From Penicillus capitatus (lineage: Eukaryota > Plantae > Chlorophyta), in the NCBI GenBank assembly GCA_965649825.1, contig OZ287695.1, forward strand, positions 1,221,081 through 1,285,080: a DNA stretch of 64,000 nt, given 5' to 3'. A program made the position numbers and the translations under genes. This document shows, piece by piece, positions 30,712-56,030 of this stretch. Numbering within the stretch: position 1 is the first letter of the stretch; every line of letters starts with the position of its first letter. The notes beneath the pieces are model-generated. The model was not told the DNA's origin. It ran no database searches and was given only the letters and a program-made list of their open reading frames with translations.

Positions 30712-31290
30712 ATGAAAGCTTCAAGTACTGTTGCTAAAACAATCTTCTTTCGGTCTTGAGTGGCATGCGTTTTAGTAACTTTGCTGTGCCTCTGCGTCTT
30801 GCTCGCTCGTCCGATGCCCCTTCTGTCGTTTGCCGACGCATACGACGTTGCCGCGCCGCCTAACGGCATTTACCTTGTGCGCATATGGGACATCGGAGTG
30901 AACGTTATGGATGACCCAACGTGGACAGGCCATGTCGATTTTCACAGCGAAGGAAACGGTGTGTTTGTCGGTGCGTCTATCTATCCCTTACCCATACATA
31001 TCTCAATCGTCGGTGCCTGTACAGGTGACTGGCTTGAATACAGCGATCACTTTAGCGCCTTCTATTCGTCCTCGACGCAGCTCTTGACGGGTGGTTGGTT
31101 TTCTCAAGGAAACCTCTTCTGGGGCGGTATTCACTTCCGCTGGGATGGTACGCGTTTGACAGGAAAGTGGACATGGTATGGACGTAATGGAACGGGATAT
31201 GAAGAATGGTTTCCTGTTGGTCCTGACTATGTCGTCCCAGCGCTGCCACCCCAACCACCCCATGATGAAGAATACGACGGAAGTCTGTGA
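30712..31290 (+). CDS. Secreted Trp-rich beta protein, unknown family, copy A
   Basis: 13-nt exon 1, then introns 30725-30760 and a 54-nt phase-1 intron. Signal peptide followed by PPNGIYLVRIWD...GDWLEYSDHFSAFY...LTGGW...WGGIHFRWDG...GYEEW and a Pro/acidic tail. Confidence 0.8.
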
Positions 31291-31336
31291 TGACAACCAT
31301 ATAACGAAAAGTCTGTGATGACAACCATACAACGAC
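31281..31336. repeat. 2 x 28-nt tandem duplication spanning the stop codon of copy A
   Basis: aagtctgtgatgacaaccataYaacga occurs at 31281 and 31309. Confidence 0.85.
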
Positions 31337-31839
31337 GCATCGTGTTATCGCCTCTCTGCTTTCGAGGCGAGTCGACGCGATATTTCTAGTGTTCATGCAA
31401 ATCAGTCAATCTTGTTTATGCATGACCAATGGATGGACTTCGCATGTTTTTTAGTCTTTTATGTGTCTTAAAAACAAAGAAACTTCTTATTTCGAGATCT
31501 CTTCGACATTCGTGTCTGTGCTGTGTTTTGATTGTTGCCCTTTATGCATCTGAATGCACCGTTCTGGACATTTCGCATGATCCAATAACGGTCCTGGAAG
31601 GACGGACTTGCCTAAGTACAACATGTGTTGAATGTAATTAACACTTCATGGTGGCATAGATGTTCATATCCCCTTCGCGTTCCACGACAAACGTAACAGG
31701 CTGTTACACAGAGAGATCTCGTCCTTTAGTAGACAGGCATTTTCATAATAGGGATTAGATACAAGAGTGTTCTTAACAATGAGGCGACCAATGGACACGA
31801 TACAGTCCTCAATCTGCAGATGACCCTCATCGGGAATCT

Positions 31840-32295
31840 TCAGTTCGCATGCTCCTCTGTCTGTTTCTTGGCCTCTGCATCGTGCGCTGCTCGGTTCGAT
31901 TTGTACAAAGTTGACGCTGCGGAATTTGCTGGGTCGTCCGGATTGGGATCCTGTAACATGGTGCTGATGGAGAGCAGGACTTTGCCAATAGTCAGAGCAG
32001 GGGTCCATTTGTTCTGAAGAATATCGAGACAGATCGATTTACTGGGATAAACATTGCAGTGATAGATTGGTGTCTTAAACTTGACACTTGGCGGCTTCAT
32101 GGGGTAGTCCTGAGGAAATGTGATGTCCAGTGTGAAAAAGCCTCCTTCGTATGGGGTGTCGGGAGGCCCAACCATAAAAGCTTGCCAAACGAACATATTC
32201 TCTTCGTCGACGGGTCCAGCGCTGCAATTGGGCGGTGGGTCCTTCTGAATCTCGGAAAGCTCTTTTTGAATGCGCTTGAGACTGACGGACGCCAT
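31840..32295 (-). CDS. UBC: Ubiquitin-conjugating enzyme E2 (UBC4/5-UBE2D/E class), single exon
   Basis: KRIQKEL, GPPDTPYEGG.F, FPQDYPMKPP and YHCNV...ICLDILQNKWTPAL with the catalytic Cys. True start is MASVSLKR at 32295. Confidence 0.95.
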   Translation of the reverse strand: MASVSLKRIQKELSEIQKDPPPNCSAGPVDEENMFVWQAFMVGPPDTPYEGGFFTLDITFPQDYPMKPPSVKFKTPIYHCNVYPSKSICLDILQNKWTPALTIGKVLLSISTMLQDPNPDDPANSAASTLYKSNRAAHDAEAKKQTEEHAN

Positions 32296-32628
32296 TTGAA
32301 ACGAAATGGGCCTCGTAGCCGTAAACGGAGACGCAAACAAAAACAAAGCCGTTAACGTCGGCGATGGACAGACACTCTTTGCTTCGAACACACCAACCAA
32401 CCAACAGTCGTTATCATTACCAGCGTTTTCCTAATGGGTCTTTTCACTGCCACATTTCTTGAAAGGGACAAAGAAGAGACGAAAAGCGCGTGTTCCATAA
32501 CAGATCGTGACAGAAAGGGACGTGTGCGTTTATTCCTCCCACACACACGTTTGGAATTTGTCCAATCGTTACCGTGACTGTTCTGTTTTTAAAGAATGTT
32601 AAAGAAAGAATACATATGGCCAGTTGAT

Positions 32629-33237
32629 TTAACTCAGAAAGCGTTCGGCGGCCTTTTCGTCTGTAAGCCGGCAGACATCTCTCATACCAAAGAGTCTATA
32701 TCGATTGTCTGCCATCCAGTCATATCCGTTGTCCCTGAGTGCTTTGGGCATCGGCCAGAGCAGAGCAGAGATCAAAGGGAAAGGCATCTGGAGCTTCTGT
32801 CCGATCCTTAGCGCTGCGTCGGATCGTAAGTAGAAGGCTTCTTTCTCGACGACGACCATGGATGAGATGTCATCTGGTCTCCGATTGCACTTTCTGAGAA
32901 GCTCTTTGCCTACTTCACTTTGCAAAGCGGCAAATCGAAACATCTCTTGGCGATCGAGCGATAAGACGAGATTGACTCCGGCGTTGCAGAAGTTGCAGAC
33001 GCCATCGAAGAGGATAACAGGACGAGAATCTTCGCTGAAGACATCGGTGACGACGGTACTCTCTGAGCGAGAGACGCTCTCGGTCGACACTCCTCGACAA
33101 AGACGTGCTAAACGCACACTCGGCGCGCTTGAACGCCGCGTCCGGCTACACCAAAAAGCATCATCGGTCAGTACACACCGTCTCGTCTGCGCGAGGAGCG
33201 GACGTGAGGCCGCACGAAGCACACGTGAAGATATCAT
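32629..33237 (-). CDS. DCC1-like thiol-disulfide oxidoreductase (DUF393), organelle-targeted
   Basis: ILFDGVCNFC (DxxCxxC), FAALQS, RSDAALRI and RD..YDWMADNRYRLFG, with an Arg/Ser-rich presequence. Confidence 0.9.
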   Translation of the reverse strand: MISSRVLRAASRPLLAQTRRCVLTDDAFWCSRTRRSSAPSVRLARLCRGVSTESVSRSESTVVTDVFSEDSRPVILFDGVCNFCNAGVNLVLSLDRQEMFRFAALQSEVGKELLRKCNRRPDDISSMVVVEKEAFYLRSDAALRIGQKLQMPFPLISALLWPMPKALRDNGYDWMADNRYRLFGMRDVCRLTDEKAAERFLS

Positions 33238-33298
33238 GCTTCAAAATAACCTGTCGGTAGATGGGATAGATGATCGTCTTTGTCTGACGATTGTCATC

Positions 33299-35580
33299 AT
33301 GGCGCCGAAGAAAGATCCGAAGTTAAAGAAGGAAGAGAGTAGCGAGTGGGTTTGTTCGGTTTGCCATCGAGGAATCGCGATTGGCACATGCAGGTCTCCG
33401 TTGCAGTCCAAGATCGATGCGATCGAGAAACAGAAAATCGATCTGGAAATGCAGATCGCTTTTCTCACAGAGAAACTGTCGAGAGCGTCCGAAGAACGCG
33501 CCGTCTATCAGAAACGCGCCGAAGAGTTTCGAACAACGCTCGAGGAGACAAAACAGAACTATGTACACTATCTGACTCCCGTTTTCGTCCTCTCCATCGT
33601 TCGCGAGACGACAGGACGATATCTTGGCGCACCATACATTACAGGCGAAAAGTGACGAAAAGAAGGCGGATGATCTGATACGACGGGTCGAGCAGCTGGA
33701 AGGACAGATGAAGGCGAAAGACGAACGCATTTGCGTTCTCGAGGTCCGATAACGCCATCGATCGGAAATCGACGCTCTCTGTGATCCAGGTCCAACGTCA
33801 AAAGGACAAAGAAATCCTGAAAGAGTGTGATTCGGCATTGGAAGACAGACAGAAGCTGGAACAATTAGTCAAGTCTCAGCAGTCGATGATCGAGAAACAA
33901 TCGAAAGAGATCGATCGCTTCGTCCACAAAAACGAAGATATCTTGGCCGAGAACGCAGCTTGTCGCGATCAGATATCCGATCTCACTTTACAGGCAGCGG
34001 ACAAAACGGACGTAAACATTCTGTTTGACGATGTATGCTTTATTACGCATCGTTGCCGAACGGTTGCTGGCGATATTCCATCCGATAGCAAATCGAGCAG
34101 CCTGGTCTGTGTTGGAGGTATGCCGGCGGGCGTATCGAGAAGTGATGTGACGCGATCGTGTTTTCGACGCAGGTGAGAAACTCGTCCTCTGTGGCGAAAT
34201 GGATGGCTTGTTCAAAATTCATTCGTTCGATCTGTCGACGTTTTCGTGGACGAAGCACGATCGAAACTCCAATCTGCCTTTCTTATCTCGACGGGGACAT
34301 GCTATGTGTCCATTTTCTCGATCGAAGCTCATCCTCTATGGCGGATTTCAAAACAGCGAGATCTGTTCGGACGTCTCCATACTGAACTCAGAGACTCTTA
34401 ACTGGCAGGTAGGTTGGCGGGTACCCTTGATCGTGATGATTGTGTCGAATCTCCGTGCAGCGTGTCGATCTGATACAGCTTGTCGCGCCAAAGCCGAGAC
34501 ACAAGCACGCGTGCTGCACATCGCGTGATCAGCTTTTCGTATTCGGCGGCGTCGTTGATGGAGAGTTGACGAATGAGCTGTGGATTCTCGATGTTGAAGT
34601 CTTTCAATGGCACGAACTTATCGGATACGAGGACGAACCGTCGCCGAGACGGGAATCGACGATTGCCGTTTCTGAAGACGGCAAACGGTAACCGAATGTT
34701 CCACGAAGACGACAATCGCAACTGATCTTGATCTCCTTACCAGACTGTACGTTTTTGGCGGATATGATGGACAGCAAGATCTCAATGATCTCTACACATT
34801 GGATATCGAGAAGCGAACGTGGACGGCGGTGCAGACCGAAGGGAGATTACCCGAGCCTCGTCGAAGTCACATCAGTTCAATACTCACGTCTTACTTGCTA
34901 ATCGCTGGGGGCATGACAAAGAAGAGAGACAGCGACGGTTGGCGGAATTTAGGCGACTGTCATGTTCTGGACCTCTCGACGTCTACCTGGGAAACGATCG
35001 ATGACGGGACGTGGATCGCCGAGTATCCCTGGATGCACACCGTCGGCAAAGTCCCTCGCTCAAGTCTCTTCCGAACGTGGAACAAAGCGTAGGAGGGAAG
35101 CTACATGACGTTCTGGGACAACCAACTCTTCACGCTCAGACCAGATCGACACAACCGACTTAGCCAGATTGGCATCGTGCAGTTTGTACTGCCGACAGAG
35201 ATTGCGAACATGCGCGTCACGAAGAAAAAAGAAAACCATATCCAATCGACGTGCGAATCGACGGAGGTAGATCGTGATGACGACGCCGATCGTCTTTGTT
35301 GAGTAGATTAGATATCGTGGCGATCAAATCGACGGCACACACGATGAGTGTTGAGTGGCGACCGCCGACGAAAAACGTGGAGCGCATCGACTACTACAAG
35401 CTCATGCTTGCGACACACACCGGCAGCGTCGCGTGCGTATATGAAGGCAAAGAGCGACAGTATAAGATCGTCCGTTTGCGCCAGAATGCAGAATACATTC
35501 TCTGCGTCAAAGCGGTATATGATGACGGATCTTTCGTGTGGAGCGAATCCAAAGCTCAGCGCACGCGGTGTGCCGCATGA
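33299..35580 (+). CDS. Coiled-coil + Kelch-repeat + C-terminal fibronectin type III protein
   Basis: N-terminal heptad-rich segment. Kelch motifs RRGHAMC...LILYGG, LFVFGGVVDGELTNELWILD, FGGYDGQQDLNDLYTLD and PRRSH. FN3 motif VEWRPP...YYKL...YILCVKAVY. Many short introns. Confidence 0.75.
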
Positions 35581-35687
35581 ACGAATGTATGCGTTAAGAT
35601 CTTCCGACGATATGGGAAGTCGCATTGAACGGCCTTTCGGCGATTGTCGGAAAAACGCGTCGGTAACGTGTTCTTGCCTTACGGACT

Positions 35688-36838
35688 TTAGAAATCGTCC
35701 GATGGGTCGCGATCACTCTCAGGGACATTGATTGTCGATCTTCCGTCCGGCAGATGTGTCATGCCACGAATCTCGTAATCCTTTCTCTGCTCTCGCAGAC
35801 GCGTGGCATAGTCCATCCGTTCTTTCAGCTGCGACAGCAGACGGGTGACGGCTTCTTCGACGGAGGCCAGGCCTGACTGCGACGATGGATCCTCTAGCGA
35901 CACTACGATGTCCGCACTTTTGTAGAATTTCTCTCTGCACTGCCGCTGCGTCGAAGAGAAATCGAGTATTGGATTTCACCTTTCTGCGTAGATGCGTGTC
36001 AGTTTCTCTTTGGCGATTTCGATCGGATTGGATGACGCTTCATCTGCCGTCTGCGATAGCAACGGGCGTTGACGCAATCCATCCTTGGCAACGCGCTGCG
36101 CCAGTTTTTCCGGAGGCGCGTTCAGAAACACCACAATTCCTTGATGGAGATAACTCCAATTCGCTGGACGCATAACGATGCCGCCTCCAGTTCCCACGAC
36201 TAAGTTCTTATACTGATGAAGATCTCGCAGCACCTAAGGCGCATTGCCAATTCAATCCTCTCAACAAAGAATGACGACAGTTGTTTCGAGTTTTCGGAAT
36301 GCCTCTTCGCTTTCTGTCGCAAAGAATTCGTTGATGGAGCATTTGGCCGCTTTCTCGATCAGACCGTCCGTATCCATGAAGAGATACTTCAGACTCTTGG
36401 CCAGGACCGATCCGACTGTCGTCTTGCCACTGAGACACGCCTCGCTCAGTTCACTCTGCAGCGGAGATCGGCCCACGGGGGACATACCTACCCATCATGC
36501 CCACGAGATACACATTCGTTCCGCCCAGTCCTTCGGCCACCGCATCCGCCGTGTCCTGTCTCGCGTATTTCGCTGCGAAAACGATCGCAGATATGCTGCA
36601 CTTGGTAACGCGGTTTTTGATGATCACTGTCGGCGCGTTGACAGAACAGTGGAAAGAATTCGCGACGTGGCGCATACCGACCGTCTTCGATACGCGCTGC
36701 CGACCGTTCTTTCATCACCCGTTTCCCACACCATCCCGCATTGCGATTCCGCAAGCGGTGGGCACAGCGCGATGGGTGCCAATTACTACCGACGTTGAGT
36801 GACGTCTCAGTCGAGACGAACGTGGCGCAGATCATCAT
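35688..36838 (-). CDS. SK: Shikimate kinase, plastid-targeted
   Basis: NVYLVGMMG-SGKTTVG (P-loop split by an intron), FMDTD.LIE, GEEAFR-like ESEEAFRKLE, VVGTGGGIV and RPLL. The start is uncertain (36838 or 36675). Confidence 0.9.
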
Positions 36839-36899
36839 CAAACCGCGAAAAGGACACGAAATCGAAGGGAACGACACTATTGCATGGGCATGTGTCCAT

Positions 36900-37887
36900 C
36901 TACTCCTTGTCTGCTTTGACAGCTCCTCGGAGGCGTCCCGTGCGCCGTGCGGCAATGAGACCGACTTTCTGACCAGCTGGAGCATCACGACGTACCGTCG
37001 ATGGATGGCCAATGTGTTGATGATTGCCGCCGCCGTGCGGATGCTCAACGGGATTCATGGCAACACCACGTACCTTCGGCCATCGATTCTTCTTCGCTTT
37101 GTTTCGGTAGTATGAGTTTCCCGCTTTCAGCAATGGCTTTTCTGTACGGCCTCCACCAGCCACTTGGCCAACCATCCCACGACAACGTGACGAAATGACC
37201 TGCCAGACATGCGTCGATCTTTCGACAGAGATCTGCGGCGATGGGGTGGACCTTTTTGGAACCGGAAGGGAGTTTGATGCGCGTCGTCCCGGCATCCGGA
37301 TTTTGAGCGACGATGATACAGTACTCTCCGGAGGCACGTGCTAACCGTCCTCGATCGCCGATCCTCTACACAGCACGCATCGCTCGTCCGAATAATCGCA
37401 TCGATCTCGATCGGTCACGTTAGACGCTTACCCCTTCGATGTTGTTAGCGATCGTTCCTTCTGGCATGCCTCCAACGGGCATAACATTTCCGATCTGTAA
37501 CACGGCTTTCTTTCCGCAGTAGACAAACTGAAAACAGCTGCCATCCGTCACGTCAAAACTGTAGCCGTACAGACCTGTCCAGTATACATTCCCTCGGTCG
37601 CAATCATCGTCTCTTTCTTCAATCCATTCTTCACAGGATTGCGAAATGTGATCTACAAGGACCAACCAATCAACCAGGCGATTTAGTAGGTTGTTATGAA
37701 TGGAGACCTTTGCAAGTGGAGCTCCGCGTCCCGGGTCATGTAAGATATCCGTAATGAGTCCACGAACGTAGCCCTTTCGCTCGATCGCATCCACAGCCCT
37801 GAGTTTTGCCGGTCCTTTCTTAAGATGCTTATGCGAACGGAAAACGCTTCCGCGTCCTTTGCGCTGTCCGCGAATGCGACGACCCAT
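36900..37887 (-). CDS. RPL8: 60S ribosomal protein L8 (uL2)
   Basis: [21 protein letters not shown] and [25 protein letters not shown], with short introns. Confidence 0.98.
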
Positions 37888-38040
37888 CTATTCACACGAC
37901 GATGATCTGCGATGCATGCAACGCCAGGTGAGATGGCACGAGACGATGCGGCCTTCGGCGGCGACGGCGCTAAAATGAACATACATTAAATCGCACGAAC
38001 ACACCATCTTCACAGAAACGAGACACCTCTGCAGCGCATC

Positions 38041-38919
38041 ATGGTCCGCGTGACGCTCTTATCGCGTTTAGAAGATGGTCTGCCGCTCGCCGAAGGCGTC
38101 GAAACCGACAAGGAACTCGGTGCGGACCTCGAAACGCTGAAGCCTCAGGCCAAAGTTGACCTACAGAATCATCCGTTCAAACTCATGTCTATGGATGCGT
38201 GAAATAGAGGTTGATGAAGAGGCTCTCGGAAGAGAGACAGGATTCCAACCGCCTGAGCATCGATTCCGGAAAATATGCGTTTCATGTGTTGATCGATAAC
38301 AGTGTCTGCTATCTCACTCTTGCTGAAAAGACGTATCCCAAGAAACTGGCATTCCAGTACTTAGAAGAGCTCAACCGCGAATTCTCCCGAATCTACGGTG
38401 CGAATGTGGACAGTGTCACGCGGCCCTATGCCTTCATCAAATTCGGTTTGTCGCTTTTTCTGGAAAAGAGACCAGAATGATGGTATGTGCGATTCTAGAT
38501 ACCTTCATCCAGAAGACAAAGAAACTCTACATCGATTCCCGGACGCAACGGAATCTGACGATGCTGAATCAAGAGCTCTCGGAAGTGCATCAGATCATGA
38601 CAAAGAGTATTCAAGAGGTCTTGGGCCACGGAGAGAAACTCGACAGTAAGAGATTCAGCGCCAGTACACGAACGGCCTCTCAAAGCCATTGCTGTTGCCT
38701 TAGCCATGACGCGCATGTCGACGACCCTGGCAATGGAATCGAAAAAATACGCTGGTCGTGCCAAAGATCTACACACTCAGGCAACACCCGCACCCTCCTC
38801 CCACATGGACAACAGATCCAAGCGGTGTTTTCCAGGCACTGATTCGAAAATACATGCCGATGGCAGTGGTCATTGGCATTGTGCTGTTGGTCTTATACTT
38901 AAGGTCGTGGTTGTTATGA
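38041..38919 (+). CDS. SEC22: Vesicle-trafficking longin R-SNARE SEC22
   Basis: [46 protein letters not shown] and C-terminal [29 protein letters not shown]. One GC-AG intron at 38781-38835. Confidence 0.95.
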
Positions 38920-39000
38920 CAAGGCACCAAGGTCCTCCCCTTTGCTCATGCTGTCGATCGATCTTGTTTAATTCATCTTCCTTCTCACTCTTTTCATTTC

Positions 39001-39398
39001 TCATGTTGCCATTTCCACTTCGTAAGGAGTGATGTCCACCGATTCGAACGTCCCATCTACGTTGGTAGGGGGATCGCGTTGAACAGAGGAGAGCATCATT
39101 TACCGCTGTTGCGATAGGAGAGTGCCAGAACCTCTTCGTTCTTAATTCCATCTTCCACGAGTTTCGTGGCATCTTCCATCACACACCATCCGTCGACTCT
39201 CTGTCTTAGCAACTGCAGTTCCTCGGCCGGCTAAGTCATGAAGCATGTTGTTGACTTGGCAATTTTTTCGTCCGCGACAGGGCGTACTTTGCTCGAGTAC
39301 TCTTCTATTTTCTGTTTGAGTTCCAAAACGGTCTCCGAGGGATGGACTAACAGAAAGTAGGTCGCCTTTTTGCGTTTAATCCGAACGCAGATGTCCAT
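39001..39398 (-). CDS. ELOB: Elongin B-like ubiquitin-fold protein
   Basis: Spliced product MDICVRIKRKKATYF...SETVLELKQKIE..PAEELQL...LALSYRNSDGTFESVDITP matches the Elongin B pattern. Confidence 0.85.
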
Positions 39399-39478
39399 TG
39401 ACGCCCTATAGTGTCGTACATTTTGTGGCGCGACTTTTGTTTCTGTAGCGAAGTCCGAACGGGATCGCCGCACACACC

Positions 39479-42400
39479 ATGTCATCGAAAGTGCGAATCG
39501 AGCAGTTCTGTCGTCGGCTGCTGAGACTCTACGCGACGTGGAAAGTGAGGACAATACTCGAGACAGCAACGATGAACGCTGGTGTCGAAACAGGACCAGC
39601 GAGAAGGTGCCTGGAAGAATGTCACCTCTCTTGCTGTCCTCTACGGTGTCAAACCCGACGCCTTGCTCTACCTCAAATCCATCTCGCTTCAGCTGTGGCT
39701 CTTTGGACTAGAGATTCCTGGTGGGCGCTGTTCATCGCGTGTTTCGCAAAAGTGTGACGTGACGTGTGTCTGTTAGACTCGCTGATTGTTTTCGGAAAAG
39801 AGACCATCCATATTGTCACCAGTCAGAAAAAGAGTGAGAACACTAGATCTTGGTCTTGCTCAAGTTGGAGAAATGTGTGACAGTTGATCAGCTTCAAGAA
39901 GTGGCAGAGACTTGTTTAAGGGAGACCAAGATCAAACTCGAATTTGTGCAGCGTCCCAAGTACTCCGATAATGCGGACTACCTGAACAAAACGCTGGACT
40001 TTATCCGATCTCCAGCCGATTCTTATTGTTTGGGCATCCTGCACAAAGAGAAGCATTCTGGCAAATTGGCTGATGATTGGACATCTGCCCTCAATCAGAT
40101 GCAAGACAAGACTGTTGATGTGAGCTCCGCCGTCGGTGCTCTCTTAGCATGCAAGGAAGACGAAGAGGTGGTGCTGATCAAGAAGGCGGCTTATCTGGCA
40201 TGCCGCGTGTGCGTGGAGTTTGTGGTGAAGAAATTGGAACGCTGTATGGAAGAGAATCTCAACATAAAACACTCTGAACTGTCGAGAGAGATCGAAAAGG
40301 TTGTCGACGACCCACGAAAGAACGGAATCAAATTGCTGCCAGAGAACTGTGACGTTGCTTTCGAACCTCTTTTCCAGAGTGGCGGCAACTACGATATCAA
40401 GCTTGGTATGCCGTCGGATGACAGAACGCTTAAGGAAGGCTGCATCGTGATGCTGCTGGGTGCACGTTATGATTCCTACTGCGCCGCCGTCGGCCGTTGT
40501 TTCTACGTTGATGCTCCGCCGAGAGTCAAGGATGAGTACAATGCCCTCCTGGCTGCAGAAGAGGCTGGTATTCGGGCCATGAAAGCAGGGACACCTCTGA
40601 AGGCTGTGCGAGAAGCGATCGTCCGTTTGCTGAACGAACGAAACATGGGACATCTGGCAGAGAAGCTAAGCAAGTCCGTCGGTTATCTAATGGGTACTGA
40701 GCTGCGCGACAATTACTATAATCTTAACGATAAGAACAAGCGCATCATCAAGCCACGCATGGTCTTTCACATTTCCTTGATGGTGCAAGGACTGGAATGG
40801 GAAAACGAGGAGATGAATAAGCGCCAGCCCTATGTTCTCTTCCTCATGGACACAGTGGCCATTGCAGAGAACGGACAGGAGGTAGAAGTACTGACGGCAT
40901 TATGCAAGAAAGAGTGGTCCGATGTGTCTTACTATAACGAGCGGGATGTCGAAGAGGAAGGCAAAGCCTCTCCACAGCATAACCCTGTCATCCTGGAGCA
41001 CCGTCTGCGTCGAAAAGACGGAAGGTCCGAGGATGAACACCTTAAAGAGAATCACAGGAAGGCTGTCCAGAGCGAACTGGAAGAAGTCAAGAACAAAGAG
41101 ACACTGGAGAGGTTGACAGGAGTGGCCCCTCTCTCGCGTTCCCGCAAAGTCAGAGGACGCAGCATCTTCGATGTGGAATCGTACACGCATATTCGCGACA
41201 TTCCTCCTGGGAAAGCCCGTTTGCCGCTTGTACAGATTGACAGAGAGAGGGAGTGTGTCCTTCTGCCTCTCTTTGGACTGGTCGTTCCGTTTCATGTGAT
41301 GGTGATTCGTAACATTATTAGTCAAACCGATGGCGAACGTGCTTACATCCGAGTCAATTTCAACTTCGGAGGAAGCTATGAGCCCAGTGCACGTCTGCCT
41401 CAGATCGCACTCTTAAAGGAACTCTCTTTCCGGACCACCAATGTACAACACGCCTCACAGGTAAGGCATCATGACTGACTGTCCGCTTTAAACATCGAGG
41501 CGTGTTCTGTGTAGACGGTGCAGGAAGTGAAGGCATTGAGGACTTATGTACTGAATCGCGATAAGGAACGCGCAGAACGGGCTACTTTAGTGACACAGGA
41601 GGAGCTCGTTCGTGGAAAGCGTGCATTCCGTTTGCCCGACATCTGGGTGCGTCCCACTCTTGGCACACAGGGGAGGAAAATGAGTGGAATCTTGGAAGCC
41701 CATCAGAACGGATTTCGCTATTTCACTCCGAAAGGAGCACATCTGGATGTGATGTACAGGTCCGTCAGTGCTTTTCATTCGCGATCGAATTGATATCTGC
41801 ATTGGACTGTCAGGAATATACGTTTTGCTTTCTTTCAACCGGCCTTCAAAGAACTGCTGACCATTTTGCATTTCCAACTGATCGATCCGATCATGGTTGG
41901 CAAGAAAAAGACATCTTACGTGCAATTCTTCACGGAGATCAGCGACGTCGTGCACACCGTTGAAGGTGGTCGCCGTTCTGCATTTGATCCCGATGAGATC
42001 GAGGAAGAAGTCCAAGAGAAGCTCCGTGTTCAAAAGGTCGATCATATCACTTCACTTTGTTTGACAAGACGTTTATGCATTCTTTAGATCAATCACGAAT
42101 TCCAGTTGTTTGCCAAACGTGTTCAGGAGCACTGGTCACGTGAGTTTGCTGAGCTGGAACTGGAATTTGATGTTCCTTTTCGTGAGATGGGCTTTTATGG
42201 AGTACCGCACAAATCTAATGTCTATATGATGCCGACCGTCAAATGCCTGGTGGAATTGACAGAGACGCCACCGACGGTTGTGCCGATCGAAGACGTGGAG
42301 ATCGTCAATCTGGAACGCGTCGGATTCAATCTGAAGAATTTCGACGTGACCATCGTCTTCAAAGACTTCGATCGAGATGTTCTCAGAATCGACACGGTGC

Positions 42401-44874: not shown

Positions 44875-45452
44875 TCATGGCAAATCTCCATGGTACTCTT
44901 CCTCGGGAGGTGGCTGTGGAGGGAGAGGGGGAACGATGTAGTCAGGCCCGGCTGGGTACCATTCTTCGTATCCCGTCCCATTTCTGGGGTGCCACGACCA
45001 ATGACCAGTGAATCGATAGCCATCCCAACGGAAATAGATACCACCCCAAAAGAGATTGCCCTCAGAAAACCAACCGCCAGAAAGCAGTTTTGTGGAGTCC
45101 GAATAAAAAGCGCTGAAGTGATCACTGTACTCGAGCCAGTCGCCTAGAAACGCATTTCGTGCCTGCATTTTTCGAGGCATGATTCAACGGACCTGTATAG
45201 ATGCCATAGCCGTCGAGGCGCAAATTCACGTGTCCTGTCCACGTTGGCTCGCCCATAATATCGACGCCAATATCCCATATACGAACAAGGTAGATTCCTT
45301 GTGGCGGGAGAGAGTCGTACGGAGCTGACCAAGACGAGAATACAATCTGGAGTTTCAACAAGGCGAACAAAATCAACTGAGCGACTGGAAAAGAGAACGG
45401 TCTTTAACAACGGCACCACGGAGCAAAGGTAACCAACACCTGCGCTCTTCAT
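44875..45452 (-). CDS. Secreted Trp-rich beta protein, unknown family, copy B
   Basis: ATG 45452, 13-nt exon 1 and two phase-1 introns. Product MKSAVAQLILFALLKLQIVFSSWSAPYDSLPPQGIYLVRIWD...GDWLEYSDHFSAFY...GYEEWYPAGPDY, a close paralog of copy A. Confidence 0.85.
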
Positions 45453-46661: not shown

Positions 46662-47632
46662 CTACTTCAGTGAAAGGGCAAACTCCGTGAGTCGAGTATT
46701 GAAAAGATCCGGATCCGTCAGGTAAGCAGGATGTTCTCCGTTCGTTATGATGAGCTACGAAAACAGACCGTGCACAACGTATGATGCCATCCATATCGTC
46801 GATCACCTACCTGATCGTACTTCTCGAAGTTCCTCTTGAAGATCGGCAAGTTCTTAACGGCCGATGTATCCCGCTCTCCCACGACAGCGAATACCGACAA
46901 CTGCATCAGATTCTGAAGTACTGAGCATAGAAGACCGATCACACTTTTTTTGAGGTCTTGGCAGACGGTGCCAGACTGCCAGTGCTCACTGGAGCCACCG
47001 GGACGTAACCGTCAATCAACTGTCCATGGCTGTTGATGAAAGGAATCGAGAAGTCTCTGCAGCCATACCTTCTCTATACACAAAACAAAAACTGGCGGCC
47101 ATACCCGCTCTTAGATGGCGACACAATGATCTTGACATCTCCCTGTACGTACTCAACGACTTCCTTAACAAAGGCTGCCGTGTTCGAGGTTGTTGCCTCT
47201 TTGCTCTTGCCGTATCCTGCATCACACATGGAACAGAGATCTCACTCTTTTTGACAGCTTGCCTGGGAGATCCAGAGCAAAGGCCAAGATTCCTTGGTCT
47301 GCCAAATGGCTCAGTGTGCCGATGTCTTCCCACGTCTGAGAAGAGAATCTCGCTCCGTGCAGCAATATCACTGTCACATCCGTTTCTACGCACATATGTG
47401 CTTTCTTTCTCATTGGTTTGTCAAACGTCACATCACCATTCTCCACAGGCTTGTACTGTTTGCAGTAGATTTGCTGTCCGTCGACGGTAAAGTACCCGTC
47501 GTTCGGCGTTTCTGTCTCTGGCTGCGCAGACATGATTGGCAAAAAGGCGACGCCGACAAGAGAACGCAAACAAACAAAGGCCGTTATCAATGGTATCAAA
47601 CAGAAATCGATTTCTCGTCGCATTCGCATCAT
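46662..47632 (-). CDS. ABHD14-like alpha/beta hydrolase, copy 1
   Basis: [33 protein letters not shown] nucleophile elbow, [13 protein letters not shown] and GEHPAYL. The start is 47632 (with a hydrophobic leader) or 47533. Confidence 0.85.
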
Positions 47633-47798
47633 CTGTACACTGTCAGAAACGATAGACAATGACACGGCAGTTGAGCTGACATCGTCAACACTTCCCTCAA
47701 ACACATAACAACACGCTAAGCGAGCTGTCGAAAAGACGTCTATTATTTTTGCCTCTCCATGGGGTCGTCCATTCTCTTCTTTCTATTGCAGTCATTAG

Positions 47799-48545
47799 CT
47801 AAAACGTTTGTCTAAGAAACTTGAGCGAAAGGACAAATGCTGAGAGTCTTGTGTTGAACAGTTCTGGATCCGTGAGATAAGCTGGATGTTCACCATTTGG
47901 AACGATCAGCTGAGAAAGAATGCATTCCTTGACATGATGCACAAAGGGGATACGGGAAGGGACCTGGTCAAATCTCTCGAACTGTTTCCCGAAGATCGAG
48001 GACCTCTTCACGCCTTGTGCGTCGTTTTCACCAGCCACAGCTAATACATGCAACTGCAGCAGGTTTTTCGCCAATCCGGAGAGACAGAAATCTCACGCAC
48101 GTTTTTCTGGACGTCATTGGAAGGCGCCAGACGGTTTGTACCAACTGGAGCCACAGGGACATAGCCGTCGATCTCTTCACCGTACTTATTTATGTACGGG
48201 ATTGAGTATCCCCTACATCACCCCCAACAAACTCCAGCCATCGTATTGCCTTTTCTACCCGCTCACAGAGGGCGAGACAATGACCTTAACATCTCCTTCG
48301 ATACCATCCACGACGTCTTTGAGAAAGGCCGCTTTGTCGGATGTCGTGGCCTCTTTGCTTTTACCATATCCTGCTGTCCATTCCAGATCAGACGTTAACG
48401 TTGTCTCGGACCGTGCCTGGGAGATCCAGTGCGAATGCTAAGATGCCCTGGTCGGCCAAGTGGGTCAGTGTTCCGATCTCTTCCCACGTCTGAGACGAGA
48501 AGCTGGCACCATGTAACAGTATCACCGTCACACCCGTCACTGCCC
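47799..48545 (-). CDS. ABHD14-like alpha/beta hydrolase, copy 2 (exon 1 not found; possibly 5'-truncated)
   Basis: VILLHGASFSSQTWEEIG, DLP-GYGKS, VIVSPSVSG, VAGEND and GEHPAYL, with the same intron positions as copy 1. No equivalent of the first exon was found upstream. Confidence 0.7.
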
Positions 48546-48580
48546 CTATCTCTTATGACATGTGGAGAGGGTAGCGCAAG

Positions 48581-49712
48581 ATGTCGAGGAAAGGGCACTT
48601 TCAGCAGAGAGGTTAAAAAAGCCATTGCCTAAGAGAAGAGTGCTTTACCAAGGAGACGATGCGATCATCATCGAGATTTGTCGAGAGACCGAAGAGAGTC
48701 CAGTTGCGGCGGCATTGGTCCGTGCGCTGGATCATGCAAAGAAACAGAATATATCATTCTGCTGTCATACGCAGACAACAGCAGTCCCCCTTGGACGCAA
48801 ATGTATATCCTGGTTGCAAAAGGAACAACGGAAATCGCACTCAAAGACAGCGACCCACGGAATTATTCCCTATCGACTCATTCTCCTTGAAGTTTGTCTG
48901 TCTCCATCCGCGAGACGAGATGCTGGACTGTCACCTTTAGGCAGCGGAGCTCATGGAAGAGCTCAATAAAGACAAACTACAGAGTCTGTTGCGGAGAGTT
49001 TCGAGATTTTTTCCCGATTCCAAAGTGGGATTGATCATTATCGGACTCGAAGCCTATCTGAGAATCAAGAAAACGACGATGTCTGTGCCTTACACGATGG
49101 GACAGGTGGAGGCACGGATGGTAGACATTTTCGTCAACCTTACTGGTATTGTGTACCGCATGGTGATCAATATGACAGAGGCGGCTGACCATATCATTCA
49201 GCTCACTCGTGCCTTTCTCAGAATTGCGAACAATGATTACGATGTCTCATTCCTGACAGTCTTTGGCGGATGTAAGATGACGGAAGCGATCAAGATGGTG
49301 GATCTGAACCTAAGCAGAGAATCCCTGGAAGAGTCGCAAGACGAGATGCTCCAATGGATCAATATGTTGACGGCCGTTCCCAGCATCGGACCCAAAGATG
49401 CTCATGTAAGACATGCATGCATTTCTCACACTTCTGTGCTCACTCTTTTCAGGGCATTGCATTGGTCTACCCGACATTCTTGTCTCTCCTAGATGCCTAC
49501 GCCTCTCCTGACAGGTTCTCCGTCTCCTGCCATTTTCCATTCTAGGATGTGCGTGTGGCAGGACGGATGAGGAAAAGAGGCTGCTGGTGGCGGATATCCT
49601 GTTGCCCCCTCAAAATGATCGTCGAATAGGGGATGCCGCATCGACATCGCTATACAACTTTTTCAGCAACACAGATCCAAATGCAGCAATCCATGGAAGG
49701 AACATTTCATAA
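48581..49712 (+). CDS. EME1: Crossover junction endonuclease subunit EME1-like (ERCC4 domain + HhH)
   Basis: GLIIIGLEAYL, EAADHIIQLTRA, WINMLTAVPSIGPKDA-GIALVYPT..SLL, RRIGDAAS..LYNFFS.TDP. The start exon is uncertain. Confidence 0.85.
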
Positions 49713-49733
49713 CAATCCACAATAACATTGTCA

Positions 49734-51325
49734 TCAATTTGGTGTCGCCTTTGTCTCTTGTTTCGCAAAGGGGATCAGTTCCATGCCACCCATAAAAGGG
49801 CGCAACACTTCGGGAACGACAATGCCATCTGATGTCTGATAATTCTCAAGTATGCAGCACAAGGTGCGTTCTGTTGCCGTGAGGGTCGCGTTCAACATGT
49901 GCACATATTTCTTCTCTTGGGCAATGCCCTCCTGCTTAGCCGTGCGGATACGGGTGTCCAGTTTTCTAGACTGATAGTCCGTGCAATTGGAGCAGCTCAC
50001 AAGTTCTCGATACGTCTGCGATGCCGGAAACCACGCTTCGAGATCGTATTTCTTAGCCGCTGCATTGTTGAGATCTCCAGAGACGATGGCCACCACTCGA
50101 TAAGGGATCTTCAATGCCTGATAGAAATCTTCGGCATTCTTGATCATCTCTTCCAGGAGCTTCCATGATGCGTTATCATCTGGGGAACACACCACAAACT
50201 GCTCGACCTTCTCGAATTGATGCACTCTAAAGATTCCCAAGGTATCGCGTCCTCGAGATCCGGCTTCTTTGCGAAAACAGGTCGAGTAGCCTAGTTGCTT
50301 AATTGGCAGCTCATCCGGTTCAACCCATCTCTTGCGGTGCATTGCGCAGAGTGTCTGCTCGGATGTGGCAATGAGATACTTATCGTCTCCCTCTCCCGTA
50401 ACCTACTGGTGATCCCTTAATCACAAGGACCATCCACCATAAGAAATAATACCTTGTACAACTCTTCGTCATACTGCTGCAGTTCGGCACACTCGGCCAT
50501 AGCTTCAGTGGTCATGAAGAAGGGCGTCTGGATAATACTGTAACCGCGGCTTCGCCCAAACTGAAGAGCAAAGTTGATAAGGGCTTGATTGAGCAGGACG
50601 CCTTCATTCGTCAGGTAATAAGCACGCGATCCAGCCACACGAGATGCAGCTTCAAGATTCACGATATTGAGTTCATGGATCAGATCGAAATGGATCTTCT
50701 TGTGCACATCAGCATCGTGTTTGGCCTCTCCATACGTACGCAACAGCTCATTATTCTCCTGCGATCACTATCAGGACAAACGATCTGAGTGGACTGGCGC
50801 GAGCGGACCTCTTCTTCGCTGATAGGGACGGAATCGTGGACGAGATTGCCGATGAGATTTAGACAGGCATCTCTCGCTGTCTCTGCCTCCACGGATTCCT
50901 TTTCGGCGTCCTGGATTTCTTTCCGCATCGTTTTGGACTTCTCCTGCAGCTCAGATGTGTCTTCCTTTGCCTAGATGCGTTACATTGAGTGCTGAGTTTT
51001 CGTAGGCTTGTTCTTTACTTTGCGCATTTGGCCTATCTGTTTGTTCAGTGCATTGAATTCCTTCTTCAGCTGTTCCGTCTTGTACTGAACTGCAAAGGCA
51101 GAAATGGAGAAACTGCGTGCGTTCGGACAGGGGGTTACGGTTTCTCCATCGTTTGTCATGTTCGATAACTTGGTCCACGAGTCCCACATCTGCAAAACGC
51201 CGCCTCTGCGATTCTCGCACGCGCTCTGGGTCGCCGCCTTTCTCTAAGAAGACAGGCATCTGTTCGTCTCTCTCCAGCAGTGACCTTCAACACTTACCCT
51301 CTCGAAAGAGATTGATATCCAACAT
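49734..51325 (-). CDS. SARS: Seryl-tRNA synthetase, cytosolic
   Basis: [79 protein letters not shown] and HMLNATL.ATER. Confidence 0.98.
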
Positions 51326-51473
51326 TCTGAGAGATAGCAACACTGGATCCTTGGCGGCACGAATGGAGCCGTTTGTGGTCTGATGTGACGTGGATGCAGA
51401 AAAGGATAGGCGAATGAACGATAGTGTCTCGTCAATTGCTGTTTAAATAACGAAATGCGTCGTGTTTTAGGAG

Positions 51474-52815
51474 CTACAAGTTAAAATCGGACTGGTCAGC
51501 ATCGAATCGGCGAGCTCTCCTCGGTGATCGAGGCTCCTCGTCGACATCCATGTCCTCGAAATGCACAGGGACACGTCTGGCCAAATCCTCTCGCGTTTCG
51601 CGGAGAGCCAAAAGCGTTTCATTTACAGGACCTCCCATCCAGCTAGAGGTCACTTCACCCATCATCAGATCCGCATCGTCCTCCGATCCAGAAATCGAAC
51701 ACGCATCAATGCTGGAACAACCAGCAGCTGATGGATCGTTCTGCTGAGAGACACATCATCCACCAAAAATGACATTGGCTGGCCGGCTGACCTTGGGAGG
51801 TGTCGATGGCATTGTATCGGAGGCGTTTGTGCTTTCGCTGTCTTCCACATCTCTTGTCGGGAAGAGTGGGATCTGATGCAACTGGTCATAGATGTTCTCA
51901 GCCGTTACATTACACTATCACACAACACATGCCGAATGAGTGAGGAAAGTGTGATTATGCGTGAGAGATCTGACTTGGTTACGGAATGTTAGGTCGGCAC
52001 CGTGCCGTAAGAGTCGATGCATAACGATCGCGTGACCACCAGACGCCGCATCATGCAAAGGAGTATTGCCTTTGCGATCCACGACCATAACGGTGGCCCC
52101 ATAGTTCAGTAAAAGATACACAACAATCAAATGTCCTTCATAGCTTGCCAAATGAAGAGCAGTGGCTCCTTGCTGCACACAACAGGCAACCAATCTCACA
52201 TTTGTGCCGATAGATCTCAAATGGTCTCGCTTTGTCGGGGCGGTTCACATCAGCCTGTCGTTTGCAGAGAAACTTCACTGCTTCGTCGTGTCCCTCCAAT
52301 GCTGCTATATGTAAGGATGTCATGCCATTCTGTAGAAGAGATCACATTGAGTGGTTTTGGGATGGTTATCTGAGATGAGCTACGCGATCGGAGGCATTGA
52401 TTTCGGCTCCTGCCATTGTGAGGGAAAGCATGGCATCGACGTGTCCTCGTGATGCGGCCAGATGCAAAGCTGTTGATCCATTCTACGAAGACAGCCAAGA
52501 TACTGTCGTCATCACAGAGTCGCTGAAAAACGCACGTCGTCGGCCAAGTTGACATTCGCTCCAAATTCTGCCAAAATCTCAATGGCGCCGTCCTTGCCCA
52601 ACCATGCCGCCAATTGAATGGCACTCCATCTCTGTTGAAAGAAGGCGACGGCGACGTAGAAATTGACAGGTGCTGTGGGCACGTGTAGGGTTTCGTACTT
52701 GTAGGCTTTCTACTTGCTCAGTGATGTTTATATTGCGTGCACGCACGCATGTTGTTCGCAGCGTTTCAAGAGATCCCTGACGCACGGCATGGTGCAGACT
52801 TTGACACCCACCCAT
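51474..52815 (-). CDS. Ankyrin-repeat protein with a putative N-myristoylation motif
   Basis: Repeats such as ALHLAAW, TALHLAAS, TSLHIAALEGH, TALHLASYEGH and TPLHDAASGGH. It starts MGGCQS and ends in a low-complexity acidic tail. Confidence 0.85.
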
Positions 52816-53531
52816 CTCGGAGTTCCGAAGAGCGTGACAACAACGGCAGTGATGATGCGTACACGCAGAAATATTGATAGCAATCATTTAAATAGTCATC
52901 CATCAAGCCATTGATCCGATGGATTGATTCTACGGAACGCAGACGGACACTGAACGCGGCGCCTGTTAAGCGGAAAGGCATAGGCAATTTTTGGATCTCG
53001 CGATTCTAAGGCCAAAATTGCTCTCGTATAAACGCATTATTGATAAGCCATGTACGACAGACATTTAGGGAGATAGATTGTCTTCGACGGTCAATTGCTT
53101 CTTGCCTGTGCGATGCTCACTGAGAACTCGACATCGTTTGAATTGAACGTCGAGGTTTCGATAAACTCCGTTCTCTATTGAGGGTTCTCTCTTTTGCATG
53201 TCCACCATCATCGGACAGCAACAATGATCGAGCAGAAGCATTTGACGTCTTTGATTCGCAACGACCTTCTTTGCCAGAAGTTCTGCGCCCGACGTGCAAT
53301 TTCTGAGGAAATCTTTATTAAACGTCAACCGGGAGGCAAGGGATGGACACGGGAATGTCGACGAACCGTATTATGGAATGACTGAACGGATGGCAGCAAA
53401 GCACTGCGTACATGAGTGGATAATTTGACGGTCTCCTGGCGACAAAGATATCCGCCGCCGTTTTTGGACTTATCTAACGCGGTTTCCTTTCACCCTCCGT
53501 GTCGACTTCGCCACGTTATCGAACAAGCGCG

Positions 53532-54035
53532 ATGAATAAAACAAGTTTGCGTTCTTTCTTTTACGTGTTTTGGAAACGCGTTGTGTGTTGGTTCAGTTAT
53601 CGTCTTCGCATTCCTGCTTGCAGTTGTTGAGTTTCGGCTGGCGAGTCTCGTCGCTGCGCAGTGTCCTGCCGATTCGCCACCTCTCGGCACTTACCTCGTT
53701 CGCACCTGGAATTCGATGGATGATGTCTATGGCCCACCGTCATCGACTTCGTCCTTAGATGTGCGAACCGACGACTGTATCGTCTACAGAGGTGCGCCTC
53801 GTACATTCGCCCAATGATGAAACAAAACACCAGTGTAGGCGAATACCACGAATACAGCGACAGTTTTGTTGCATTCTACGCGCCGGCGACGAGAATGCTG
53901 ACGGGCGGTTGGGTCTCTGAAGATGGCAAATGGGGCGCCATCAGTTATCGCTGGACTGGTACTCGCGTCGGCGGAAGATGGGTGGCGTATGCGCAGACTG
54001 GAACAGGATACGAAGAGTGGATTCCACAGACTTGA
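53532..54035 (+). CDS. Secreted Trp-rich beta protein, unknown family, copy C
   Basis: 13-nt exon 1, introns 53545-53596 and 53792-53838. Product MNKTIIVFAFLLAVVEFRLASLVAAQCPADSPPLGTYLVRTWN...EYSDSFVAFY...LTGGW...WGAISYRWTG...GYEEWIPQT. Confidence 0.85.
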
Positions 54036-55140
54036 CTTTCGTGTTCACGAGCCGTACTCCAGGAAAATCCTCCCGACACTAAAACCTATCTATCATATCT
54101 CTCACGCTCCCATTCCCAGTTCAAATGGTCACTTGTCTTCTCGTATCCTATGCTGATTCATACATCATAAGTATAGAAATAAGAAAATGGAATGATTGGA
54201 ATACAATGATTGTGTGCTGCCACAACGGCAGACGCTGCAGGTGCCGTTGTCTACAATTCGTGTAATCAGACGAATCTGATGCTGTGACTCGTACCTGTTG
54301 TGCTTCCTCTCCGTTGATGGTGATTGGGTACTGTATCAGTAGTGTCTAGATATGTCCGAGATGTTCCCTGTCTTTGAGATGCCTGTCACATCTTCTTTCG
54401 GTTGTTCGAATGTACTGTTGTTCAGGTGGCATGTCGGACAGTTTAGAACGCATCCAATATGGCAATCCACTCAATTCATCAGCGATCGACTTCAATCGAT
54501 GAGGGCATTCTAATCGCAAGCCACATGGAGCGAAAAAATGGTCGCCGTTCTCATCTTAACTCGAGAGGTACTTGTTCTGAATTGCAATGATGCATTGCCC
54601 AGAATTGGATGCTTCTGTCAAAGACAATGGTTTTGTTTGTGTGGACAAGTCGCTTTATCGCACTTAGCTAGATCAGAGGCGGTTTTTTGCCGTCATGCAA
54701 TGAGTACAGATGTGAGGAATATCAGGCGCGCGCCACCCTTGATGTGCAGACAGACAAGACTTCCATTTCAGTGGATGGGCTAACGGCTGTGTTTGCCACA
54801 GATAGCTGATGTAATTAATGGTTCTTTAGCATTTCTCTCATCTCTTAGAACGGCAGGTTTATGTTACCAATATCAGAGGAGGTAAACGATGAACAGCAAT
54901 AGCTATCTGTGTCTATGATATCTAACGGTGCTTTACCGGTGGGTTGGCTTTCCTTTCGTTTGCGTCGTCAAACCGATATCTCAAAGAGTTTTTCTTCTAT
55001 TCGTTTAATGTCCGCGTCGGAATGCCTTTGGTGGTATTACGATAGAGAGGCGGCGCATATTGTCAGAATACTAATAAGGAAAACGACACTTAAACGAACG
55101 AAAGGGTTCAAGATCCGAAGAGACGCTTGTGGCGACAGGT

Positions 55141-55430
55141 CACCGAAACAGAAAGACTTCGCAGTGATGATACCGCCCTTTAGCAGTGAACGCAATGACA
55201 ACCACTCCGTCGCCAATGCAAAGCAGAGTAAAAAAAGACGCCGTACCGCGGCAGATCATTGAACTAGAAAGATTTCGCAATGATGATAGCGTCTTTTCAC
55301 AGTGAACGCAATAACAACCACTCTGTTGCCAATGCAAACAGGAGTCAAAAAAGATGCCGAGGCACGGCAGATCACTGAGACAGAGAGACTTCGCAGTGAT
55401 GGCGCTACGTCTTCGCAACGAAAACGATGA
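55141..55430. repeat. Degenerate tandem repeat, 116-nt unit, about 2.4 copies
   Basis: Unit starts cacYgaRacagaRagacttcgcagtgatg recur at 55141, 55257 and 55373. Shared internal blocks are agtgaacgcaatRacaaccactc and gccaatgcaaa. Confidence 0.8.
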
Positions 55431-55514
55431 TGACCACACTTCTGAGCCTATTTATTCGATTCCTCCTCCGTTTCGTCGCATCGACTTCGCCGCATTCTCA
55501 GCACGTTAACAAAC

Positions 55515-56030
55515 ATGAAGAGAACAAGTTCGCATCGCGTCGTTTGCGTGCGATTCTCCGAAAACAACGCCGTGTGTTGTAGTTGTCTCCCTCGCGCTCT
55601 GCCTTACTCTCACTCTCCAACTGGCGACCACTGCCAAAGCAGTATGCACAAGCAGTACCCCGCCTGTTGGTTCCTATTACGTGGAATCATGGTCAATGCA
55701 AGAATATAGATATACACAGAGCCCGTCGACTTCGAACATGACAATTCAGACCGAAGACTGCACTGTCTACACAGGTACTTCTTCGTCGACTTTTGTGGGG
55801 TCATCGCAAAGAACGACGTTCCCGTAGGTCACTACACCGGCTTTGACGATTACTTTGTCGCTTTCTATTCCTCCGCGACGGGTAAGTTGAGCGGAGGATG
55901 GAACGAAAGAACCTGCGACGGCAGTTGGGGTGCGATCGATTTGCGTTGGGATGGTAGGCGTTTCTCTGGACGCTATGTTCGGCACCCGGTCGTTGACATC
56001 GGCCATGAAATATGGACCTTACAGAACTGA
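55515..56030 (+). CDS. Secreted Trp-rich beta protein, unknown family, copy D (not represented in the ORF track)
   Basis: 13-nt exon 1, introns 55528-55582 and 55775-55827. Product MKRTIVSLALCLTLTLQLATTAKAVCTSSTPPVGSYYVESWS...DDYFVAFYSSATGKLSGGW...WGAIDLRWDGRRFSGRY...GHEIWTLQN*. Confidence 0.85.

Follow-up and report, generated by a model that had tools for sequence, protein, structure and literature searches.

Four dispersed genes of the siphonous green alga Penicillus capitatus very probably encode a family of secreted eight-stranded beta-barrel proteins

What are the four small, tryptophan-rich proteins encoded at scattered positions along a single stretch of the Penicillus capitatus genome, and what might they do for the alga? 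The window analysed here is the whole of that stretch (64,000 nucleotides (nt); contig OZ287695.1 of assembly GCA_965649825.1, positions 1,221,081 to 1,285,080), and the four genes, g1 to g4, lie between its positions 30712 and 56030. Judged from their sequences and those of their relatives, all four are genuine nuclear genes of this siphonous alga, spliced and functional, and they very probably represent a real family of secreted barrel proteins. The sequence family is named in none of the libraries searched (Pfam, NCBIfam and PDB sequences), while its predicted fold is a known one. As to role, we lean towards binding.

The gene models were obtained by reading the loci directly and testing candidate splice sites. 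On the plus strand, g1 (30712..31290) consists of exons 30712-30724, 30776-30970 and 31025-31290, with introns of 51 and 54 nt; on the minus strand, g2 (44875..45452) consists of exons 45452-45440, 45384-45193 and 45143-44875, with introns of 55 and 49 nt, and both encode precursors of 157 amino acids (aa). The remaining two are on the plus strand: g3 (53532..54035; exons 53532-53544, 53597-53791 and 53839-54035; introns of 52 and 47 nt) encodes a 134-aa precursor, and g4 (55515..56030; exons 55515-55527, 55583-55774 and 55828-56030; introns of 55 and 53 nt) one of 135 aa. All four share a first exon of just 13 nt, encoding MKAS in g1, MKSA in g2, MNKT in g3 and MKRT in g4, and each is interrupted at gene offsets 13 and 259/260 by a pair of phase-1 introns (GT..AG, 47-55 nt). 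The original prediction, which had described four paralogs with this common structure, was right in its coordinates, in the 13-nt first exon and in the two phase-1 introns at homologous positions. For the first g1 intron there are two candidate acceptors: another in-frame AG, at offset 49, would give a 36-nt intron, and the choice alters the signal peptide only.

The encoded proteins are similar to a degree far above chance on BLASTP scores. g1 and g2 are 65% identical (E 1e-68 to 1e-78), g3 and g4 are 41–43% identical (E 1e-31 to 1e-36) and the other pairs are 33–44% identical, with g1 and g4 at 33% (E 1e-16 to 1e-20). Four motifs had been called invariant, and in the four-way alignment each of them is unchanged: PPxGxYxVxxW (P32, P33, G35, Y37, V39 and W42), DxFxAFYxxxTxxLxGGW (D77, F79, A81, F82, Y83, T87, L90, G92, G93 and W94), WGxIxxRWxGxRxxG (W102, G103, I105, R108, W109, G111, R113 and G116) and GxExW (G127, E129 and W131). 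The ending GH[DE]x[FW]T, also attributed to the domain, holds for g4 only (GHEIWT), as g1–g3 end in GYEEW[FYI]P. Searching the 64-kb window by tblastn with the four proteins and 13 distant family members revealed no fifth copy.

That the genes are functional is indicated by comparison with a relative represented by three collinear contigs (L001–L003) from assembly ERZ26696514, whose SPT16 exon is 99% identical in protein, with a synonymous divergence (dS) of ~0.39. The relative holds syntenic orthologs of g1, g2 and g4. The g1 ortholog (L002/L003) keeps both introns and has a ratio of nonsynonymous to synonymous divergence (dN/dS) of 0.15; the g2 ortholog, adjoining SPT16 in L001 (9750-10460), has a dN/dS of 0.375, with intron 2 differing by an indel of 2 nt; and the g4 ortholog (L001 227-666, minus strand; 61–64% identical by tblastn) has a dN/dS of 0.42 and introns with indels that are not multiples of 3. 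Throughout the ortholog nucleotide alignments, the splice boundaries (GT and AG) are preserved, indels that are not multiples of three occur in introns only and exon indels stay in frame. The second g1 intron, which is 54 nt long, in frame and stop-free in P. capitatus, explains how a prokaryote-style gene caller came to make a read-through protein (P0001) in the databases. In the relative this intron is 50 nt long, and reading through it shifts the frame and garbles the C-terminus of the corresponding database protein P0007, so it is a true intron and not a coding insertion. Neighbouring genes have a dN/dS of 0.014 (SPT16) and 0.06 (GH77) at a dS of ~0.39, and on these estimates the family is under purifying selection yet is changing 3- to 30-fold faster than the neighbouring housekeeping genes.

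At the corresponding place the relative has no g3. The gene sits in a 1.6-kb segment (53092-54706) without counterpart in the otherwise collinear L001, which is continuous across the point (1449 to 1428), so gene content varies among close relatives. Because g3 is just 41–43% identical to g4, it is not a recent duplicate, and loss or relocation in the relative appears more likely than recent gain. Three further observations concern the genes themselves. The g2 ortholog pair has a dS of 0.18, about half the 0.39–0.53 of g1, g4, SPT16 and GH77, and over the final ~45 coding nt the two copies hardly differ; a possible source of the low value is gene conversion, or else added constraint at the RNA level. 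At the 3' end of g1, a 20-nt direct duplication, AGTCTGTGATGACAACCATA, occupies 31282-31301 and 31310-31329, starting in the final codons and spanning the stop codon, and it is single-copy in the relative. Just upstream of g4, at 55136-55401, a 116-nt unit is present in 2.3 tandem copies with 81% matches, and overlapping blastn pieces against L001 suggest that its copy number differs in the relative.

How far does the family extend beyond these species? A word-indexed search of 5.8 billion proteins gave seven matches, and HMMER, run exhaustively over 1.84 billion cluster representatives, gave 27 at E <= 0.001, about 20 of which are short or fragmentary proteins that carry the same motifs (matches are designated P here). 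Large multi-domain matches (P0020, P0022, P0029, P0034 and similar), which align in several separate, mostly short stretches, belong to unrelated families (PD40, cadherin-like, Peptidase_S74) and were treated as spurious for that reason. The only named members are two loci of Caulerpa lentillifera, g4477 (P0002 and P0008), which is 54–61% identical to g1, and g6849 (P0025), which represents a divergent subfamily. Coral metagenomes contain members 83% identical to the third exon of g1, and the Logan assemblies contain others, one of which (L009) retains a short first exon as well as the intron 2 position. Another member lies on the JGI metagenome contig BBAY70_10048970, from a series that we take to be macroalgal-surface samples from Botany Bay. 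With Caulerpa the only named source among the 27 HMMER matches, the lineage restriction that had been proposed agrees with the data, and the family appears so far to be almost confined to siphonous green algae. Several entries (P0001, P0003, P0004, P0005, P0007 and P0013), which derive from ENA or from gene calls on the contig of the window itself, were called without introns and either start late, at a Met codon inside the gene, or continue through intron 2; such intron-blind calls leave fragments, which is probably why the family has gone unannotated.

Two homologs, P0018 and P0035, are uninterrupted, bear signal peptides and lie on Logan contigs of 6.3 and 16.3 kb; these are possibly bacterial. 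Scans of metagenome contigs and of bacterial and archaeal genome contigs with P0018, P0035, P0014 and the family alignment gave no matches. Both proteins score against the LIC10280 family (NCBIfam NF050085, uncharacterised, Leptospira), P0018 at E 2e-6 (28 bits) and P0035 at E 0.013 (15.9 bits), although these scores are far under the 100-bit cut-off and the algal proteins do not match the model. On this sequence likeness, the LIC10280 family could be a distant bacterial branch, and the matches hint at a wider uncharacterised bacterial superfamily. In the literature searched, the sole mention of LIC10280 is in a vaccine-candidate screen.

The proteins themselves have the character of small secreted domains. 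Signal peptides had been proposed for all four, and the hydrophobicity profiles are consistent with this, each N-terminus reaching a peak 10-residue Kyte-Doolittle mean of 2.7–3.4 at residues 5–14; the same profiles contain no later transmembrane-like segment in g1–g4. The Caulerpa isoform P0008, which begins MTRILVYLLFLFGVFGSRSQ, has a clear signal peptide. The mature proteins are of 12–15 kDa, acidic (isoelectric point 4.3–5.1) and 16–20% aromatic, with up to 9 Trp, 8–12 Tyr and 6–8 Phe per ~132 residues. Two subtypes can be distinguished. Those of g1 and g2 have no cysteine in the mature part, and they carry a Pro-rich acidic tail: the g1 product comprises a signal peptide, the eight-strand barrel domain and the C-terminal tail PALPPQPPHDEEYDGSL, and the g2 product, 65% identical to it, has the same kind of tail PPLPPQPPPEEEYHGDLP. 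Those of g3 and g4 are short and tailless, with a cysteine pair (C27 and C66 in g3, C26 and C64 in g4) that could tie the N-terminus to strand 3; g3 thereby has two cysteines in the mature part and g4 has three, the third being in the beta5-beta6 loop. A comparable pair occurs in P0018 and P0035 at neighbouring, non-identical alignment columns, while g1, g2 and their orthologs have lost it and share the conserved tail PPQPPxxEEYxGxL. In its fuller form, PPLPPQPPxxEEYxGxL (31218-31287 in g1, 44878-44950 in g2), the tail is kept in paralogs, orthologs and coral-metagenome copies and is absent from g3/g4; its sequence makes it a possible site of hydroxyproline or Tyr modification, or a possible C-terminal sorting propeptide.

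Conservation across the wider family falls on strand and turn glycines (G92, G103, G111, G116 and G127), on alternating aromatic and hydrophobic residues and on one acidic residue (E129), while R108 and K117 vary. The family alignment contains no conserved polar constellation suggesting catalysis, and this glycine/aromatic pattern points to a structural scaffold and not to an enzyme.

What does the scaffold look like? Two Caulerpa lentillifera proteins, the correctly spliced P0002 and P0025, were modelled with AlphaFold2, the P0002 alignment comprising 14 rows including the exon translations from the window. The P0002 model (mean predicted local distance difference test (pLDDT) 86.8, predicted template modelling score 0.81) has eight consecutive beta-strands joined by tight turns, and the divergent P0025 (pLDDT 87.5) likewise has eight. 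Foldseek lists eight-stranded up-and-down barrels for the models with a probability of ~1.0 and template modelling (TM) scores of 0.45–0.65, among them Cap15, the BB1/mFAP designs, the NHBA, fHbp, TbpB and HpuA barrels, hemophilin, nitrophorins, fatty-acid-binding proteins (FABPs) and a retinoic-acid-binding lipocalin; neither model has a PDB match at E <= 0.001. A viral structure library returned uncharacterised barrels only, with a best E of 1.3e-2. The eight-stranded barrel guessed from the glycine and aromatic pattern thus holds as a prediction, in two independent models with eight meander strands and barrel matches. In these models the strands form the antiparallel up-and-down barrel of 8 (or 10) strands that characterizes calycins. 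As modelled, the fold is a known one, and the Foldseek matches indicate no particular family.

The sequence searches are equally silent on a named family, in keeping with the original prediction, which could assign the proteins to none. Pfam (E <= 10) returned nothing for g1–g3 and one chance match (E 0.15) for g4, NCBIfam returned nothing for the algal proteins, and PDB profile searches gave nothing significant, their best values (E 0.3–0.4) falling on unrelated proteins such as the LigD phosphoesterase hairpin (E 0.3) and 4PW1 (E 0.39), both taken as chance. No paper containing the motif DHFSAFY was found in the literature search. The suggested link to avidin and streptavidin did not survive: a 20-sequence family profile aligned to an avidin-plus-streptavidin profile gave an hhalign probability of 0.4% (E 0.15) with the strands out of register, pairing family strands 5–8 with avidin strands 1–3, and neither the top 50 Foldseek matches nor Pfam included an avidin. 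A specific link to lipocalins is not supported either. The lipocalin hallmarks are an N-terminal 3-10 helix leading into GxW of strand A, and a C-terminal helix packed on the barrel; there is no Pfam match to lipocalins, and the models have neither the N-terminal 3-10 helix nor a long C-terminal helix. DSSP finds no helix before strand 1, and after strand 8 P0002 has just two helices, each of 4 residues, where model confidence drops (block-mean pLDDT 78, then 53), and P0025 has none. Among lectins of related algae, the F-type domain of BPL-1 and the H-type domain of BPL-3/4 were sought with Pfam and not found, and HRL40 was set aside on its 13 half-cystines per subunit, versus 0–3 cysteines in g1–g4.

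Comparison with known barrels is instructive at the level of shape. The best geometric fit is to the BB1/mFAP proteins (6D0T, 6CZG, 6CZH and 6CZI) and to Cap15 (7N34), with target-normalised TM scores of 0.57–0.65 and a root-mean-square deviation of 3.6–5 A over ~113 columns; like the algal family, they have ~110 residues, tight hairpins and glycines within strands, and the mFAP designs carry a small ligand within the upper barrel. However, BB1/mFAP are designed proteins, Cap15 is a bacterial defence effector and identities are 4–13%; this is a likeness of fold with no implied homology. The C-terminal barrels of the neisserial surface lipoproteins NHBA, fHbp, TbpB and HpuA, and hemophilin HphA, are extracellular, eight-stranded and of similar size, and they recur for both models with a probability of 0.9–1.0; they are, however, lipoproteins of bacteria, mostly with several domains, whose ligands are host proteins or haem, with TM scores of 0.39–0.54, identities of 9–20% and no sequence signal. 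Calycin-type barrels (lipocalins, FABPs, avidin/streptavidin) resemble the family in being small, often secreted and antiparallel up-and-down, and they share strand-end motifs such as TGxW/TGxY; nitrophorins, FABPs and the retinoic-acid-binding lipocalin are among the Foldseek matches, with TM scores of 0.37–0.46. Nevertheless, there is no sequence relationship, the Pfam lipocalin and avidin models being silent, and FABPs have 10 strands as opposed to the 8 predicted for the family.

The reading that we prefer starts from a precursor whose signal peptide would direct it into the secretory pathway and whose mature part would fold as a single eight-stranded up-and-down beta-barrel. The destination of the proteins may be the wall, apoplast or large vacuole, where they would work as non-catalytic binding modules in the manner of calycins. 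The ligand would be held in the barrel or at its mouth, at the end bearing the long, variable beta1-beta2 loop and the indel-bearing beta5-beta6 loop, and the paralogs may have diverged in specificity. In the family alignment, the beta5-beta6 loop is the most variable segment (entropy 2.23) and shares its barrel end with the 11-residue beta1-beta2 loop, while the beta6-beta7 turn at the opposite end is the most conserved loop (entropy 1.48). An environmental or biotic role would suit genes that evolve fast and vary in presence between relatives. The evidence favours neither a small hydrophobic or aromatic molecule nor a glycan as ligand, and binding itself is purely what we infer. Several points weigh against this reading. 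The models are of Caulerpa homologs (54–61% and ~26% identical to g1) built on shallow, 14-row alignments, and the best Foldseek E-value is just 2e-3. Several of the best structural matches (NHBA, fHbp, TbpB) are closed barrels that bind proteins and not small ligands. The contrast in loop variability between the barrel ends is also modest (odd loops 1.8–2.2, even loops 1.5–2.0). For the explanation as a whole, a calycin-like, non-catalytic binding module in the secretory pathway, we find belief and doubt evenly balanced.

The alternative that survives best places the ligand outside the barrel. Exposed Trp/Tyr platforms, with no internal pocket, would make the proteins lectins or wall-polysaccharide binders; they might, for example, attach to walls of xylan, mannan or sulfated glycan, or contribute to the wound response that coenocytic algae mount through lectins. 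The aromatic content probably exceeds what the core of a ~100-residue barrel needs, and, from the strand alternation in DSSP, the conserved residues W102, R108, Y121, E129 and W131 may share one outer face. Bryopsidales also have several unrelated lineage-specific lectins (BPL-1/bryohealin, BPL-2, BPL-3/4 and HRL40), likewise small and lineage-restricted in siphonous green algae. BPL-2, the mannose lectin of Bryopsis (BAI43482), has been reported in Bryopsis only, not in Caulerpa or Ostreobium, whereas the present family occurs in Caulerpa; it was modelled as MFP2-like, a fold that differs from the barrel, and is compared here by description only. HRL40 of Halimeda is a disulfide-linked tetramer of 11.6-kDa subunits, each with 13 half-cystines. 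Against the lectin explanation, neither structure nor sequence matches a lectin family (soybean agglutinin gives TM scores of 0.23–0.24, and the F-type and H-type Pfam models are silent), the orientation of the outer-face residues is deduced, and R108 and K117 are not conserved family-wide. We consider it fairly unlikely.

Still less probable is a structural or self-assembling secreted protein without a specific ligand, whether a wall component, a Tyr/Trp-cross-linked substrate of wound plugs or a protein held in place by its Pro-rich tail. The conserved PPQPP...EEY tail of g1/g2 and the richness in Tyr and Trp would suit such a protein, and the unpaired third cysteine of g4 could form an intermolecular bond. 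Nevertheless, the tail is absent from g3/g4, the repeats typical of wall glycoproteins are missing, and the compact globular fold together with purifying selection on barrel residues favours a folded functional domain. There is, to our minds, only a slight chance that the proteins are secreted calycin-type protease inhibitors, comparable to bacterial metalloprotease inhibitors or triabin, that shield the alga from its own or microbial peptidases. The general fold class is the same, fast evolution fits an arms race and a large expansion of secreted peptidases has been reported in Ostreobium; yet the top 50 Foldseek matches of either model include no inhibitor, there is no sequence similarity and the case is wholly circumstantial.

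Two further explanations can be treated briefly. An array of MORN-type beta-hairpin repeats in place of a barrel is suggested by the pattern xTGxW...WGxIxxRWDGxRxTGxW, which resembles the MORN consensus, and by PDB profile matches to FAP227 (E 8.2) and MORN1 (E 2.9–3.5). However, those E-values are not significant, the Pfam MORN model is silent, and both AlphaFold2 models match closed eight-stranded barrels with no MORN protein in either top 50; the resemblance stems from the shared hairpin pattern xTGxW...G, and since the models are closed barrels we reject MORN membership, leaving it a very small probability. That the genes are chance open reading frames (ORFs), pseudogenes or bacterial contamination, as their unannotated state and truncated or mis-spliced database entries might suggest, can be dismissed almost completely, given spliceosomal intron positions conserved across species, dN/dS below 0.45 and a syntenic setting amid eukaryotic housekeeping genes on a 792-kb contig (ENA metagenome assembly ERZ25074695).

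That setting was correctly described as one of interleaved housekeeping genes, and the neighbours include a GH77 glucanotransferase, an E2 ubiquitin-conjugating enzyme, a DCC1-like oxidoreductase, synaptobrevin, SPT16 and a class II aminoacyl-tRNA synthetase. The G+C content of the window is ~49%, compared with the 52.4% published for Ostreobium quekettii and the 40.4% published for Caulerpa; taken with the Caulerpa and coral-metagenome homologs, this fits a member of the Bryopsidales. Two other ORFs deserve mention in their own right. At 20167-22182 (plus strand), and also at L002 1466-3016, a 671-aa ORF combines a NosD-like beta-helix segment with repeats of the Chlamydia polymorphic-membrane-protein type (E 1e-14); this Chlamydia-type ORF is on a eukaryotic algal contig and is conserved in the relative. 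At 12241-14166 (minus strand), a lipoxygenase (Pfam E 3e-57) is encoded by one unbroken ORF of 641 aa.

What would the barrel family mean for these algae? At its most ordinary, it is a routine lineage-specific orphan family with a common fold, unsurprising in kind. At its most far-reaching, and we think this improbable, it would be a new class of extracellular binding protein (an algal lectin, or a scavenger of vitamins, haem or lipids) built on a minimal Trp-rich barrel, shared with LIC10280-like proteins of a few bacteria, possibly by horizontal transfer, and serving coenocyte biology (the wound plug, cytoplasm aggregation) or the interaction of endolith, coral skeleton and microbes. If the proteins do bind ligands or glycans, they could be possible protein scaffolds, being small and, for g1 and g2, disulfide-free. 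The family also illustrates how intron-blind gene calling in metagenomes hides genes by leaving them in databases as fragments. Caulerpa, Bryopsis, the coral-skeleton borer Ostreobium and other siphonous green algae each live as one giant cell, whose wound response and life in the holobiont rest on secreted proteins, most of them uncharacterised. For this secreted biology, the g1–g4 family provides a defined group of candidates that are conserved and evolve fast.

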